A stretch of DNA of 26,282 bases. Origin: Macrostomum lignano. Taxonomy: Eukaryota. How positions within the stretch are numbered: position 1 is the stretch's first letter; each line of letters begins with the position of its first letter. The stretch spans positions 1 through 26,282 of the forward strand of contig NIVC01001477.1 of the NCBI GenBank assembly GCA_002269645.1, in the 5' to 3' direction. Shown here in pieces: positions 2,864 through 26,105 of the stretch. The position numbers were made by a program, and so were the translations under genes. The notes beneath the pieces were generated by a model. It searched no databases and was not told the origin of the DNA. It saw nothing but the letters and a program-made list of their open reading frames with translations.

Positions 2864-4983
2864 TTACAACTGGCAGTTGTAAGTGTTTGACTCCTCAATG
2901 CAACGCAGGCACTGCTGATAGCACACTGTCTCAACTTTTTCCACGCTTTGCCGCATTGTCTCCAGCTTGCCAGAGAAGTCTTTCGGAACAATCCGGACCG
3001 CGGTCTGGCACTGTTTCGCAGCAGCCAAGCAGCTTCTGCAACGTTAACAGCAGGATGAATTTGTCTTTGTGGGAGAAAGAATTGGGACATGTAAAACTAG
3101 AGAAATTAGCAATTAGAGCAATTAGAGAAAACAATTGTCACGTGACTATGTCCAGCCAATGGTGACTTAAATGTGCACGCATCCATACAGGGTTTTTGTA
3201 GTATAGCAATGCACGAATCACACACATACTTGATATCTGTAGCGTCAAGGCAGCTTAGCTTTGAGCTATTCGCCGTTTACCTTCGGCGACATCGTCCCAA
3301 CAACCAGTGCTGAGGCAAATCTGCCTATTTCGCTGAGCACATACAAGAGCACCAATGCTGTACGCAGGCACGTACTCATACACACGCTCACAGGGTTTTC
3401 AGTGGCCCTGACTTTCTAATCGGTCAGGCATGTACACTCTCGGTGCCTTGTGGGTTGGCCCTCATGGCATGGGTGTGAATCGCATGACAACCCCTGGGTC
3501 AATGTTGTGCAAAAAACCGTTGAGCAACCCGCTCTGCCCCAATGAATCAATGAGAACGGCCACCAACCTGTAGAAACGCCAGCACGCGCTCCGGCGTATC
3601 GAAATCAGCCTTGGCAGCGGCATTGAGCGCCAGGCGCATCAACTCGCCGCTGAGGTCGCACACGCCAAGCAGGTAGTCGAACTGGGACACCAGCAGTCCG
3701 GACGGCAGGCGGTCGCGTACCCCGCCGGACAGGCTTAGCAGGCGGCCGGTGGACAGGAATTCTAAGAAAGTCATAGCCTCGATCAGCTCCTGCAGTCCTG
3801 GACTATAAGCCCGCCTGTATTCCCAGGGATCCTGGCCGGTCAGCTCAGAGCTGATTGGCAGCAGCTTAGACGCAATCAGCTTGTCCAATCGCTGGCTAAC
3901 TTCAGTCAGTACAGCCAATCTTTCTTCATCGGAGGCGCCAGCCACTCGATGCAGAGTGAAAATAAGCCGCTTACTCTCCATGGTTATGTCGCGAGACAGT
4001 TTCACAATGCGCTCCCGCCTGTCCTGCTTGACGTCGAGGCGCTCTTTGAATGTCTAATTGGTGTATTAGAACAGTTAATTTTACGAGGTAAGTATTCAAT
4101 ACGTTTATTAACTTTTTATCAGCGTATTTTTCGTAGATCGCTACTATTAGTAGAGTAACAGCACAAAAAGCAAATTATAGTTAATTTTATACAGGTAATA
4201 ATTGGTTATTTTTACTGCAAGTAAAATGTCAAAGAAATGCAACATATTGTAGTTGTTTTTATAAATTTTATATTATCAATCTGACAGTTTTCTTCTATAC
4301 AATACTCATATTTCATGATGCTCCAGACTTGCATATTGAACAGGCTTGCATCATCAAGACTGAGTAAATGGTCAATAATTAGCAGCCCTGAGCTGCGGTA
4401 CAAGTGCAGGATGGGAGTTGCGACCCTTACAATGTCAGGACTGTACAAGCTATATGCATATCTCGGATGCACCATGCCACTGACTGCAACACCTGGGCCA
4501 TGTTGAAATGGGTCAGGGTGTAATTTCTTTGCTAGTTCTATAGTACAGCCTTTGATTTTATTGGAATTAGTACATTTAAAATTATCAAAATCGACAGACT
4601 TTGCAGAAATTTTGCTGTACTTTGCCAAAAAAATTTGCCATGTTATAAGGTAGCATCATAATTCTTATCCTAATCTTTTGAGCCCTTCCCAGTTATCAGG
4701 CTCCTAGATAGCCAGATGATTGGGTAGATGAAAACTGGATTAACTAATTAGCCACCAAAAAGTTTGTCACTAGGGCTTAACAAAGAATGATAACTAAGAC
4801 TGGAAAACAGTAGCCCAGGTTGCTCTAATTTAAATTTAATTCAGCACAGTTGTATACCTGAAATAGTGCTGCCACTTTGTTATTCTCATCCTGACTTAAC
4901 CTGGCACATTTATTGTCACTGGCTGGTCCAGGTGGTGTGGCATTTGGACGCTTTGAAGCTGCAGTTTCTGGTTGTTGAGGGTC
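2864..4983 (-). CDS. TSNAX: Translin-associated factor X (TRAX, C3PO nuclease subunit); three visible coding exons, last exon apparently frameshifted
   Basis: Exons 4983-4858 (DPQQ...NNKVAALFQ), 4053-3568 (TFKERLDVKQDRRERIVKLSRDITMESKRLIFTLHR...PGLQELIEA...DYLLGVCDLSGELMR...FLQ) and 3035-2864 (...KLETMRQSVEKVETVCYQQCLRC...stop), all with AG/GT boundaries. Motifs match the translin/TRAX family, including the TRAX catalytic acidic residues (ExxE and DxxGE). Confidence 0.92.
3290..3421 (-). repeat. Intronic interspersed repeat, copy A (homologous to 15953-16082)
   Basis: Colinear blocks shared with the reverse complement of 15953-16082: CATCGTCCCA, GGCAA.TCTGCC, an 18-nt identity CTGAGCACATACAAGAGC (3333-3350), ACACGCTCACA and GACTTTCTAATC. 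Confidence 0.85.
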
Positions 4984-7357: not shown

Positions 7358-21560
<14,203 letters not shown>

Positions 21561-21631
21561 GAAACTTAATCCGAGTTATTTTGTCCCTACTATGATCTAA
21601 TATCTATTGCCTACTTTGTGTAACCAGGCTA

Positions 21632-21679: not shown

Positions 21680-22252
21680 ATGAAAATTGTTTAGCGAGTT
21701 TCACTTTGTTGTTTGTTAAATTTTCAGCATACATTTAATTAATTCCACGCACTTCGCCCGTTTGTGTTCTGTTTTCAACATCCGTTTGCACTACTTGTAG
21801 TAGCAATAATAAGTAAGCTACATAACAGATTAATGCGCGTAAGTTAACTAACTAAATATTTGTTTGTATGTGCAGCTTATTTGAGTAATATTGAATACTA
21901 GTAGGCACATGATTTTTAATTGAATATATCTAGTACAAAGCACTTGAATGTGTATTTGTAATCATTTTCTTTAGTGCACTGTTTTTGTCAATTGTCGAGT
22001 ATGTTATCAATACTGAAATATAAACTTATAAATTATAATACACGGGTTCCTTATAAAAACTGAAATTTTGGGATTTAATAATGCATTTTGTGTTGCAAAT
22101 TTTAACTTATCTGCTTGCTATATGCGACGATGACAACGCTATTCTTGTCGGCTGAAATGCTACCGATAACTCATTTTGCTGTTTTACGCGTTTTTTCATT
22201 TTCATTCTCGACTGAGTCTTGTCGACGGTAAAAAGCTCGCTTTGCGGAATTT

Positions 22253-23497
22253 GTCTATGGTAAATAGACAGATATAGTTAGATGTCTATGGTAAATAGAC
22301 AGATATAGTTAGATGTCTATGGTAAATAGACAGATATAGTTAGATGTCTATGGTAAATAGACATATATAGTTAGATGTCTATGGTAAATAGACAGATATA
22401 GTTAGATGTCTATGGTAAATAGACAGATATAGTTAGATGTCTATGGTAAATAGACAGATATAATTAGATGTCTATGGTAAATAGACAGATATAGTTAATG
22501 TCTATGGTAAATAGACAGATATAGTTAGATGTCTATGGTAAATAGACAGATATAGTTAGATGCCTATGGTAAATAGACAGATATAGTTAACGTCTATGGT
22601 AAATAGACATATATAGTTAGATGTCTATGGTAAATAGACAGATATAGTTAACGTCTATGGTAAATAGACAGATATAGTTAGATGTCTATGGTAAATAGAC
22701 AGATATAGTTAGATGTCTATGGTAAATAGACAGATATAGTTAGATGTCTATGGTAAATAGACAGATATAGTTAGATGTCTATGGTAAATAGACAGATATA
22801 GTTAGATGTCTATGGTAAATAGACAGATATAGTTAGATGCCTATGGTAAATAGACAGATATAGTTAATGTCTATGGTAAATAGACAGATATAGTTTGATG
22901 TCTATGGTAAATAGACAGATATAGTTAGATGTCTATGGTAAATAGACAGATATAGTTAGATGTCTATGGTAAATAGACAGATATAGTTAGATGCCTATGG
23001 TAAATAGACAGATATAGTTAATGTCTATGGTAAATAGACATATATAGTTAGATGTCTATGGTAAATAGACAGATATAGTAAGATGTCTATGGTAAATAGA
23101 CAGATATAGTTAACGTCTATGGTAAATAGACAGATATAGTTAGATGTCTGTGGTAAATAGACAGATATAGTTAGATGTCTATGGTAAATAGACAGATATA
23201 GTTAGATGCCTATGGTAAATAGACAGATATAGTTAATGTCTATGGTAAATAGACAGATATAGTTAGATGTCTATGGTAAATAGACATATATAGTTAGATG
23301 TGTATGGTAAATAGACAGATATAGTTAGATGTCTATGGTAAATAGACAGATATAGTTAATGTCTATGGTAAATAGACAGATATAGTAAGATGTCTATGGT
23401 AAATAGACAGATATAGTAAGATGTCTATGGTAAATAGACAGATATAGTTAATGTCTATGGTAAATAGACAGATATAGTTAGATGTCTATGGTAAATA
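22253..23497. repeat. 31-bp tandem satellite, about 40 highly similar units, each with a perfect hairpin
   Basis: Unit GTCTATGGTAAATAGACAGATATAGTTAGAT; GTCTAT/ATAGAC stem around a GGTAA loop; 30-bp variants present. Confidence 0.98.
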
Positions 23498-24075: not shown

Positions 24076-24617
24076 ATAGCGGTCTAACGAAGTGAACGCA
24101 GGCAGAGACGAGTCGTACGTCTGAAGCTGAATTCATTCCAACAAAGGCTCATACTATAGCTAGCACGTCTCCAAGGAATACCAATTTCTCATGTCGTCCA
24201 GTTTCGCCCAAAGAGTAGGGCGGTGCAGTTGAAATCACGCTCGTAGAAAAAGATTAGTATCATTTTACTCCATTTCGATTCCTTGTTGTAACCGCAGATC
24301 AAATAAAGTACTATAGATCACGCGAACGGCGCATCTGCTGCCATGGATATACGGGCTGCCAGCCGCCCACGCAGAGCCTGACTGTAGATAGTTGAAAGCT
24401 GAGAAGACTGCAAATTGCTTGGTTCTATGCAGCTGTTAATAGCATAGCAGCCAATCATGATCCTCCGGTAGCTTCGGCTACACATGTAGCTGTTACCCTT
24501 TAAAATCTATCGACGGCTCCGCGATTCTGTTGCAGATTTCTTCTTTTTGAAAAATCCCTCCGCTCGTTTTTACTTCGGCACGTTATTTTAGACATCCGCG
24601 TGGTTGCTACAGTGATT

Positions 24618-26029
24618 ATGCGTTCAATGTCGGCTGTTGCTATGCTGATCTGCTGCTGCGCAATGCTCCAGCTGACAGCTCACCTGTCCTCAGCTGTGCC
24701 AGAAATGACTGCCGGAAAAGCTCGCACTGCCGGATTACTGGGGGGCAGTCGAGATAAGCGATCGGTCTTCAATCTGCGTAAGCGCCTTGATGCATTTGCA
24801 TGTACGAGGTTTGATTTGGATTCCGCCTTCTATTACATGTACAAACTTCGACCCGATTAAACTCGGTTGATGGCGCTACAGTATGTTAGGAAGTGCGCCA
24901 CAGTATGTCCGGAGGGCGCCACAGTATGTCCGGGAGGGCGCCACAGTATGTCCGGGAGGGCGTCACAGTATGTGCGGGAGGGCGCTATAGATGTCCGGGA
25001 GGGCGCCACAGTATGACCGGGAGGGCGCTATAAATGTCCGGGAGGGTGTCACAGTATGTCCGGGAGGGCGCCACAGTATGTCCGGGAGGGCGTCACAGTA
25101 TGTCCGGGAGGGCGCTATACATGTAGATGTCCGGGAAGGCGTCACAGTATGTCCGGGAGGGCGCTATACATGTAGATGTCCGGGAAGGCGTCACAGTACG
25201 TCCGGGAGGGCGCTATAGATGTCCAGGAGGGCGCCACACAGTATGTCCGGGAGGGCGCTATACATGTAGATGTCTGGGAGGGCGCCACAGTATGTCCGGG
25301 AGGGCGTCACAGTATGTCCGGGAGGGCGTCACAGTATGTCCGGGAGGGCGCTATAGATGTCCGGGAAGGCGTCACAGTATGTCCGGGAGGGGGCGCTATA
25401 GATGTCCGGGAGGGCGCTATAGATGTCCGGGAGGGCGCTATAGATGTCCGGGAGGGCGCTATAGATGTCCGGGAGGGCGCTATAGATGTCCGGGAGGGCG
25501 CTATAGATGTCCGGGAGGCGCTATAGATGTCCGGGAGGGCGCTATAGATGTCCGGGAGGGCGCTATAGATGTCCGGGAAGGCGTCACAGATGTCCGAGAG
25601 GGCGTCACATTGGAAGGTGCCACATTACGTGCAGATCCTGCAGTGTATGACGGAACCCTTATTCAGCGCTACATGTATGCGTTGTATGAAAGCATGCATA
25701 CTAAAAGACGACAGATCTATAAGTTCCTTATCAGGATGCAACCCTTTTCGCACACGCTATACAAGCTAAGAGATTCGCTTTAAATTCTTCTCTGCTATAC
25801 ATGTACTCTTCATTAAATTATACTGTGACGCCAGCACTTCTCCGACCCCCGCCGGCCACTTTTCGCAGACAAGTACTACAAACAGCTAATGCTGTACTGC
25901 ACCCGAACATGCCGGCGCAAGTTTGGCTCTGGACTGGCCGCCTCGGACTGTTACGGATACTATCAGCAAGGCTGGTACGGCTCCAAGTGCGTGTGCCTCT
26001 GCCCACTGCCTGGCCGCGGTCGGCAGTGA
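24618..26029 (+). CDS. Secreted cysteine-rich cationic prepropeptide, 106 aa (candidate defensin/mytilin-like antimicrobial peptide)
   Basis: Exon 1 24618-24777 (donor GTAAGC) and exon 2 25869-26029 (acceptor CACTTTTCGCAG) join in phase 1. Product: signal-like MRSMSAVAMLICCCAMLQLTAHLSSA, propiece ending in the furin motif RDKR, then SVFNLHKYYKQLMLYCTRTCRRKFGSGLAASDCYGYYQQGWYGSKCVCLCPLPGRGRQ. AATAAA at 26100-26105. Confidence 0.8.
24876..25625 (+). repeat. 21-22-bp CpG-rich minisatellite in the intron of the peptide gene
   Basis: Units CAGTATGTCCGGGAGGGCGCCA and TAGATGTCCGGGAGGGCGCTA, in interleaved blocks. Confidence 0.97.
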
Positions 26030-26099
26030 TGAGACTATCGGCCTGACAACATGTTGTGCGGCATCAGGTTGCAATTTTGATAATACGACAGACAAAAGA

Positions 26100-26105
26100 A
26101 ATAAA
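26100..26105 (+). terminator. Candidate polyadenylation signal of the peptide gene
   Basis: AATAAA about 70 nt after the TGA at 26027-26029. Confidence 0.6.

Follow-up and report, generated by a model that had tools for sequence, protein, structure and literature searches.

CS-alpha-beta (cysteine-stabilized alpha-beta) peptides are characterized by a cysteine-stabilized helix (CSH) core, in which a CxxxC motif is bonded to a CxC motif (reference Cys 3, 4, 8 and 9; Tarr, 2016, PMC5116183), and by a third bond that links an N-terminal Cys (reference C2) to the Cys of the gamma-core (reference C6; PMC5116183). The nematode ASABF-6Cys-alpha provides the precedent of a six-Cys member that lacks the N-terminal Cys, and the scaffolds as a whole serve toxins and antimicrobial peptides (AMPs) alike, the two being inseparable by sequence (PMC5116183). 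The mytilins display the pattern C-X3-C-X3-C-X4-C-X11-C-X-C-X-C-X2-C with the bonds C1-C5, C2-C6, C3-C7 and C4-C8, and are encoded by a four-exon gene whose precursor consists of a signal peptide, the mature peptide and an anionic C-terminal extension (PMC7168163). Here we analyze a stretch of 26,282 nucleotides (nt) from the flatworm Macrostomum lignano (contig NIVC01001477.1 of assembly GCA_002269645.1, positions 1 to 26,282 of the forward strand; hereafter the window). At 24618-26029, on the forward strand, it contains a two-exon gene for a cationic peptide with six Cys in the framework C-x3-C-x12-C-x12-C-x-C-x-C, and we consider it very probable that this is a genuine secreted-propeptide gene.

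The coding part of exon 1 occupies 24618-24777 (160 nt, with the ATG at 24618-24620) and that of exon 2 occupies 25869-26029 (161 nt, closing with the stop codon TGA at 26027-26029); between them lies a phase-1 GT..AG intron of 1091 nt (24778-25868), which begins with GTAAGC and ends with TTTTCGCAG. From the ATG the reading frame encodes MRSMSAVAMLICCCAMLQLTAHLSSAVPEMTAGKARTAGLLGGSRDKRSVFNL and then meets a consensus donor, CTGC/GTAAGC, with 24777 as the final base of exon 1; the acceptor, TTTTCGCAG/AC, makes 25869 the first base of exon 2. The joined coding sequence of 321 nt remains in frame, with the split codon C/AC specifying His, and yields a precursor of 106 amino acids. The GTAAG at 24778 is the sole GT[AG]AG donor in 24600-26100, and although two pyrimidine-rich acceptors follow it, only the one at 25868 continues the frame into a long open reading frame (ORF). 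The unspliced read-through ORF has just 80 codons, and it is all that an ORF track displays of the gene, as an earlier note on this DNA had observed. The ATG has an A at -3 and is preceded by an in-frame stop at 24501-24503. A codon-usage score trained on exons from the window itself, those of DHX15 and TSNAX, gave the proposed frame +4.8 bits and the two alternative frames -44 and -39. A reading of the flanks adds an AATAAA polyadenylation signal 71 nt past the stop (26100-26105) and, as motif matches some 115 nt ahead of the ATG, a putative core promoter made up of a CCAAT box (24451-24455) and a TATA-like TTTAAAA (24499-24505). The two-exon structure proposed in the earlier note is confirmed. 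Its exon junction is beyond chance: independent public models of the same species, described below, use exactly the same junction. That the gene is transcribed, and in which tissue, we infer.

Two thirds of the intron consist of a minisatellite with a 21/43-bp unit in about 33 copies (24872-25609). Two ORFs of 218 and 116 amino acids on the plus strand (25127-25783) were rejected as genes, being translations of this minisatellite (GGRYRCPGGRY... repeats), and a second match to the Cys pattern, at 25035, was discarded on the same ground. A tblastn search combined with a scan for the Cys pattern found no further paralogue in the window.

The translated precursor reads MRSMSAVAMLICCCAMLQLTAHLSSAVPEMTAGKARTAGLLGGSRDKR followed by SVFNLHKYYKQLMLYCTRTCRRKFGSGLAASDCYGYYQQGWYGSKCVCLCPLPGRGRQ and the stop. 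It opens with a signal peptide of about 26 residues (MRSMSAVAMLICCCAMLQLTAHLSSA; 24618-24695), in which an n-region, a hydrophobic core and a c-region of small residues are visible and which, by the -3/-1 rule, is probably cleaved after Ala26. There follows a propiece of 22 residues (24696-24761) that terminates in R-D-K-R (residues 45-48; 24750-24761). The mature peptide begins with SVFNL and the first base of the His codon (5 1/3 codons, 24762-24777) at the end of exon 1; exon 2 supplies the remainder, including all six Cys. In a published run on near-identical public models, SignalP 4.1 was positive, and ProP 1.0 predicted one site of the R-x-K/R-R convertase type, the RDKR, releasing the 58-residue peptide from SVFNL onward and with no processing site at the C-terminus (PMC10414684, S5 File). 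The mature peptide, SVFNLHKYYKQLMLYCTRTCRRKFGSGLAASDCYGYYQQGWYGSKCVCLCPLPGRGRQ, contains 9 K/R, 1 D, 0 E and 1 H; its 7 Y, 2 F and 1 W bring the aromatic residues to 10 (17%). Its net charge is +8.1 at pH 7, its isoelectric point (pI) about 10.5, and its mass 6720.7 Da with three disulfides. The Cys stand at mature positions 16, 20, 33, 46, 48 and 50, and the segment LHKYYKQLMLYCTRTCRR would form an amphipathic helix (hydrophobic moment 0.57, shuffle p = 0.007). The signal peptide, propiece, RDKR site and 58-residue cationic six-Cys product had all been proposed in the earlier note, and on recomputation its count of basic versus acidic residues, net charge of about +8, Cys spacing, coordinates, stop and nearby AATAAA were likewise found to be right.

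This composition bears on one alternative, namely that the product is a structural precursor of the eggshell or adhesive type, rich in Tyr, Gly and Lys/Arg and cross-linked through tyrosine or 3,4-dihydroxyphenylalanine (DOPA). With 12% Tyr, 12% Gly and 16% Lys+Arg, the mature peptide has a composition of the kind that resembles small cationic DOPA proteins. However, it is a single short domain lacking repeats, is preceded by a convertase-type propiece, and displays a defined six-Cys framework with a predicted compact secondary structure; we regard a structural role as highly improbable.

A protein search with the full precursor (E <= 10; 5.8 billion clustered proteins) returned only two proteins, both from M. 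lignano; four public models of this species bear on the gene. A0A1I8ICZ0, a UniProt 'Secreted protein' of 106 amino acids, is 96% identical over its full length and shares the architecture and junction; its cluster mate A0A1I8JLN2, also a 'Secreted protein' of 106 amino acids, has the same junction and a mature peptide identical to that of the window. A third model, A0A1I8FBK7 (P0002 in our search), is identical in exon 1 and reads exon 2 in two wrong frames (window 25902-26077), past the stop codon; this probably reflects an assembly indel or a mis-chosen acceptor, though a pseudogenized copy might also account for it. The fourth, A0A1I8I619 (P0004), is annotated as a 'WSC domain-containing protein' of 397 amino acids, and tblastn on the window shows that it uses the same junction between exons 1 and 2. 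It is assembled from the C-terminal exons of DHX15 (18891-19035 and 21456-21527), an acceptor at 24591 and the peptide gene, whose 5' untranslated region (UTR) it reads as VVATVIM ahead of most of the peptide precursor, before leaving exon 2 at an internal GT (~25993) for sequence that has no match inside the window. We take this chimera to be a probable annotation artefact, best divided into its parts. Since it strings DHX15 exons together with the peptide gene, it derives from the same locus in the earlier ML2 assembly. The proposed splice is therefore already present in three or more of the public models.

Two prepro types can be told apart among the copies, S24/A32/T37 and C24/T32/P37, whereas the mature peptide is essentially unchanged between them. 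The window copy belongs to the former, together with A0A1I8FBK7 and A0A1I8I619, and differs from A0A1I8JLN2 and A0A1I8ICZ0 at these three residues (S24, A32 and T37 vs C, T and P). This pattern fits recent duplicates or haplotypes. Differences affect 3 of the 48 prepro residues versus 0-1 of the 58 mature residues (Fisher p = 0.09), which is a weak hint of constraint on the mature peptide.

The same models allow us to weigh the alternative that the gene is non-functional: an over-predicted ab initio model, or a duplicate in decay, in which GC-rich DNA happens to keep an ORF open. Exon 2 is indeed fairly open in each of its three frames, and the sister model A0A1I8FBK7 is frame-shifted there. 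Against this stand an ORF that is intact, with the mature peptide identical, in three or more models or loci, the codon-usage signal in the proposed frame, and a canonical signal peptide, convertase site, Cys framework, CCAAT, TATA-like motif and AATAAA that are all where they would be expected. Moreover, the models bear 'maker-...-snap-gene' names, which in MAKER denote evidence-supported predictions. We accordingly give a non-functional locus very little weight.

The gene has also left a trace in the literature. Group 181 of the AMP-like peptides catalogued by Irvine et al. (fAMP-LP 181; M. lignano PRJNA284736, S5 File) is the identical 58-residue peptide (Irvine et al., 2023, PLoS Pathog, PMC10414684). 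That study passed WormBase ParaSite proteomes through SignalP 4.1, ProP 1.0 and eleven AMP predictors; the two entries of the group were scored as having a signal peptide and one ProP site, with an AMP prediction of 100% (11/11) for the identical peptide and 90.9% for a G->N variant (PMC10414684, S5 File). The group was dropped solely since all its members came from one genome assembly ('Same genome'), and none of the Cys-rich AMP-like candidates was synthesized or tested for activity in that work, where the group is a table row with no fold, expression or activity attached (PMC10414684, S5 File). A search of the S5 supplement for related C-terminal motifs yielded no additional family members, and the UniProt accessions, ML2 gene identifiers and peptide fragments are absent from the main texts searched, leaving this supplement as the sole literature record found. 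The description of the gene as 'hidden' and 'undescribed' in the earlier note thus applies to a naive ORF track and to nothing else: the gene is already public, as are its processing sites and AMP-like score, and the family is otherwise uncharacterized. The checks with SignalP, ProP and AMP predictors that the note had called for turn out to have been run, with positive results, on near-identical models.

The reading that we put first, with more reservation than conviction, is that the product is a secreted, convertase-processed, disulfide-stabilized cationic host-defence peptide. The signal peptide would take the precursor into the endoplasmic reticulum; a furin/PC-type convertase would then cleave after R-D-K-R, freeing the 22-residue propiece; and a peptide of 58 residues (6.7 kDa, pI ~10.5, net +8) with three disulfides would be released. 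In it, an N-terminal amphipathic alpha-helix carrying Cys16-x3-Cys20 would pack on a C-terminal beta-hairpin with Cys46-x-Cys48-x-Cys50 in its second strand, and two disulfides would staple the helix to this strand in the manner of a cysteine-stabilized helix, giving a CS-alpha-beta-like arrangement. Cys33, ahead of strand 1 in a C-x-G, gamma-core-like position, would take the remaining Cys of the CxCxC. The peptide might then act extracellularly as an antimicrobial-type effector that binds anionic microbial envelopes. The functional evidence for AMP activity is in silico, in the form of the 11/11 positive published predictors. An antimicrobial or host-defence role, considered separately, is to our mind a reasonable possibility, somewhat short of an expectation.

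As to the fold, the CSH motif is present in the form of Cys16-x3-Cys20 and Cys46-x-Cys48(-x-Cys50), which speaks to the motif alone and not to the bonding. The earlier note was right in identifying CxxxC...CxC with the CS-alpha-beta core (PMC5116183), and in attributing C-X-C-X-C to the mytilins, in which it is followed by X2-C (PMC7168163). AlphaFold2 was run on single sequences, with no alignment, for the exon-2 peptide and for a trimmed core. Both runs gave a long helix with the CxxxC, over KYYKQLMLYCTRTCRRKF, then a short helix turn and a hairpin, QQGWY/KCVCL, with the CxC in its second strand; the CxxxC falls in helix 3-18 (or 2-13) and the CxC in strand 39-43 (or 34-38), at a mean predicted local distance difference test score (pLDDT) of 72-74. 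The predicted element order is that of a CS-alpha-beta peptide, and the product may work like one. Also in favour of this are the Foldseek hits of both runs, among which the one small disulfide peptide is mytilin B, itself a CS-alpha-beta peptide, and the precedent of ASABF-6Cys-alpha.

Several observations weigh against the host-defence and CS-alpha-beta interpretation. No Cys precedes the CxxxC in the mature peptide, so the canonical C2 partner of the third disulfide is absent, and the extra Cys of the CxCxC would be the partner left for Cys33. In each single-sequence AlphaFold2 run three of the five models scored lower, down to a pLDDT of 50-57. Foldseek against the PDB, with the exon-2 peptide and with the trimmed core, gave nothing at E < 2 (best E 2.2-3.2, template modeling (TM) score < 0.42); mytilin B (2EEM) itself reached TM 0.37-0.41 with E = 2.6-3.6. 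Neither the search of 5.8 billion clustered proteins nor an exhaustive HMMER search of 1.84 billion representatives found a homologue beyond M. lignano, and therefore there is neither comparative support nor an alignment for covariation or structure prediction. The only defensin recovered by phmmer from the PDB, Anopheles 2NY8 (E = 0.96), was out of register with the motif and was rejected. Pairwise scores against CS-alpha-beta peptides did not rise above shuffles with the Cys fixed (p = 0.03-0.2), and hhalign against 16 published mytilins returned a probability of 4.8% with only 16 hairpin columns aligned. Significant similarity to CS-alpha-beta members was thus found at none of the levels of sequence, profile or structure. 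A published screen of 33 flatworm genomes (ML2 among them) for CS-alpha-beta peptides, by hidden Markov model (HMM) and BLAST, was likewise negative, and its authors concluded that the classical families of lophotrochozoans, namely CS-alpha-beta, big defensins and myticalins, are absent from flatworms; they also cautioned that AMP predictors, being trained on cationic Cys-rich peptides, over-call them (PMC10414684). Finally, exact-protein look-ups with A0A1I8ICZ0, A0A1I8JLN2, A0A1I8FBK7 and the read-through ORF returned no contig on record.

Weighing these together, we are inclined to doubt that the fold is truly CS-alpha-beta, although we keep it as a serious candidate, and we judge it rather unlikely that this is the first genuine platyhelminth CS-alpha-beta-type defence peptide with a new set of disulfides, in which CxxxC-CxC bonds are joined by one from the gamma-core Cys to the extra Cys after the CxC, which would stand in for the N-terminal Cys. 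Of the proposal in the earlier note of a CS-alpha-beta variant lacking the N-terminal Cys, the motif, the predicted order of elements and the absence of that Cys stand, while the fold is hypothetical and the similarity searches are non-significant; the structure modeling it had suggested gave the helix/hairpin layout, but at a pLDDT of 72-74 and with non-significant Foldseek results. One of the defining features of the CS-alpha-beta peptides is missing.

The homology searches further indicate that the gene is lineage-restricted, known only from M. lignano in the databases searched: they recovered entries of this species and no significant match to a known family. Two extra HMMER hits, P0005 (1042 amino acids, E = 2e-13, 15 matched stretches) and P0006 (205 amino acids, E = 2e-4, 3 matched stretches), are tandem-repeat translations and were rejected as homologues; they represent repeat-driven false positives in the representative library. 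NCBIfam, a prokaryote-oriented library, gave no match, as expected. No similarity to toxin families or known peptide-hormone families was seen in the sequence, PDB and structure searches.

These results bear on the possibility of a signaling peptide (a neuropeptide, hormone or pheromone-like molecule), which would be processed at KR in the regulated secretory pathway to a disulfide-rich product acting on a receptor. A signal peptide, a short propiece, a KR site and a single C-terminal peptide make up a typical prohormone layout, and some of the published flatworm AMP-like predictions carried 'hormone activity' Gene Ontology (GO) terms, which indicates that the predictors confuse the two classes (PMC10414684). 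Judged by its residues, the C-terminal P-G-R-G-R-Q might in principle lend itself to trimming or amidation; the amidation put forward in the earlier note is speculative, its basis being the Gly-Arg only, and ProP predicted just the RDKR and no processing site at this end. A charge of +8 and 17% aromatics would be unusual for a hormone, none of our searches matched a known peptide-hormone family, and a conserved bilaterian hormone should have homologues in other flatworms, of which none was found. On balance, a signaling function seems unlikely to us.

Fast-evolving reproductive or venom-like genes are typically species-restricted, multi-copy, small and secreted, and the present gene has each of these properties. 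It is conceivable, then, that the product is secreted by a gland and acts on a non-immune target: either as a fast-evolving peptide of the prostate or seminal fluid, or as a toxin or ion-channel blocker directed against prey, predators or mating partners. The helix-hairpin disulfide scaffold is also used by scorpion and other channel toxins, and sequence does not separate the toxins from the AMPs built on CS-alpha-beta scaffolds (PMC5116183). Neither sequence nor pairwise comparison nor Foldseek, however, uncovered similarity to a toxin family. M. lignano is a diatom grazer, and we know of no venom apparatus in it, which we count against the toxin version. A gland secretion of this kind strikes us as unlikely.

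To our knowledge, the antimicrobial effectors of flatworms are almost unknown. If the peptide adopts the helix/hairpin fold and kills microbes, then homology-based screens would have missed a divergent CS-alpha-beta-like lineage, and M. lignano, a free-living model with RNA interference (RNAi) and transgenesis, would gain an endogenous AMP and a read-out of innate immunity. A confirmed CS-alpha-beta fold would contradict the published absence of such peptides in flatworms. Should the product be a hormone, a toxin or a reproductive peptide instead, it would still exemplify a young, species-restricted secreted-peptide gene. The only phylum-wide screen set aside all Cys-rich and single-genome candidates, this peptide among them (PMC10414684); what is added here is the anatomy of the locus, a structural hypothesis and explicit negative homology tests.

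The window as a whole is eukaryotic, patchy in composition and rich in minisatellites. About 3 kb upstream of the peptide gene, on the same strand, is a gene for the DEAH-box helicase DHX15/Prp43 (14495-21600, +), whose ORF at 15034-15813 matches human DHX15 with E = 2e-139. The introns of DHX15 harbor an (ACT)n tract (16084-16369), a 30-bp unit x38 (16818-17991), 36/71-bp units (18355-18619), a 44-bp unit (19162-19524) and a 32-bp unit x45 (19936-21355), and a 31-bp x40 array (22252-23497) separates DHX15 from the peptide gene. Shortly upstream of the peptide ATG are two acceptor-like sites: ttattttag at 24583-24591 (+), 26 nt 5' of the ATG and used by the chimeric A0A1I8I619, and ttctgttgcag at 24525-24535. 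These could mark a 5'UTR intron or a spliced-leader trans-splice site; if either is the case, the peptide gene would share a transcription unit with DHX15. Elsewhere, an exon of a homologue of TSNAX (translin-associated protein X) was recognized at 3547-4005 (-; E = 4e-28 to PDB 3PJA chain J), and a purine-rich (GA)n-like tract of 1.2 kb (10565-11764), with a GC skew of up to 0.72, gives rise on the minus strand to several Ser/Leu-rich ORFs that are spurious.

Among described peptide systems, the mytilins invite comparison. Both they and the window peptide are cationic (+7 to +10), carry a CxxxC in the helix and a C-x-C-x-C in the last strand (by prediction in the window peptide), and have an aromatic-rich hairpin, likewise predicted here, GYYQQGWYGSKCVCLC in the window peptide vs RYYVSVRYGWFCYCRC in mytilin, with 44% identity over the 16 columns aligned by hhalign. 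In contrast, mytilins have eight Cys and four disulfides where the window peptide has six Cys, with no third Cys in the helix and no terminal X2-C. The window peptide has a 15-residue N-terminal extension of the predicted helix and different loop spacing, and its gene has two coding exons and specifies an N-terminal propiece without a C-terminal extension, as opposed to the four exons and anionic C-terminal extension of the mytilins. Membership in the mytilins was thus rejected on Cys number, precursor layout, exon number and profile similarity (4.8%).

With the six-Cys invertebrate defensins of the Phormia defensin A type the window peptide shares the CxxxC...CxC core and, in prediction, the order of a helix followed by a two-stranded antiparallel sheet; as in the gamma-core of CS-alpha-beta peptides, the Cys before its predicted hairpin sits in a C-x-G context. 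Unlike these defensins, it lacks the N-terminal Cys (C2), has an extra Cys directly after the CxC and possesses a 12-residue loop from helix to strand. ASABF-6Cys-alpha is comparable to it in the lack of the N-terminal Cys (PMC5116183). The scorpion K+ channel toxins of the charybdotoxin type would share with it the generic CSH scaffold, and have a basic charge and a similar size class, but show no sequence similarity to it (p = 0.7-0.9, a comparison to be taken as a lead only) and differ in Cys spacing and strand number. The fAMP-LP 181 entries, A0A1I8JLN2 and A0A1I8ICZ0, finally, are M. lignano members of this very gene family, with the same signal peptide, RDKR site and junction. If the fold is confirmed, the Cys framework of this family would be a new variant of the cysteine-stabilized helix/hairpin theme.

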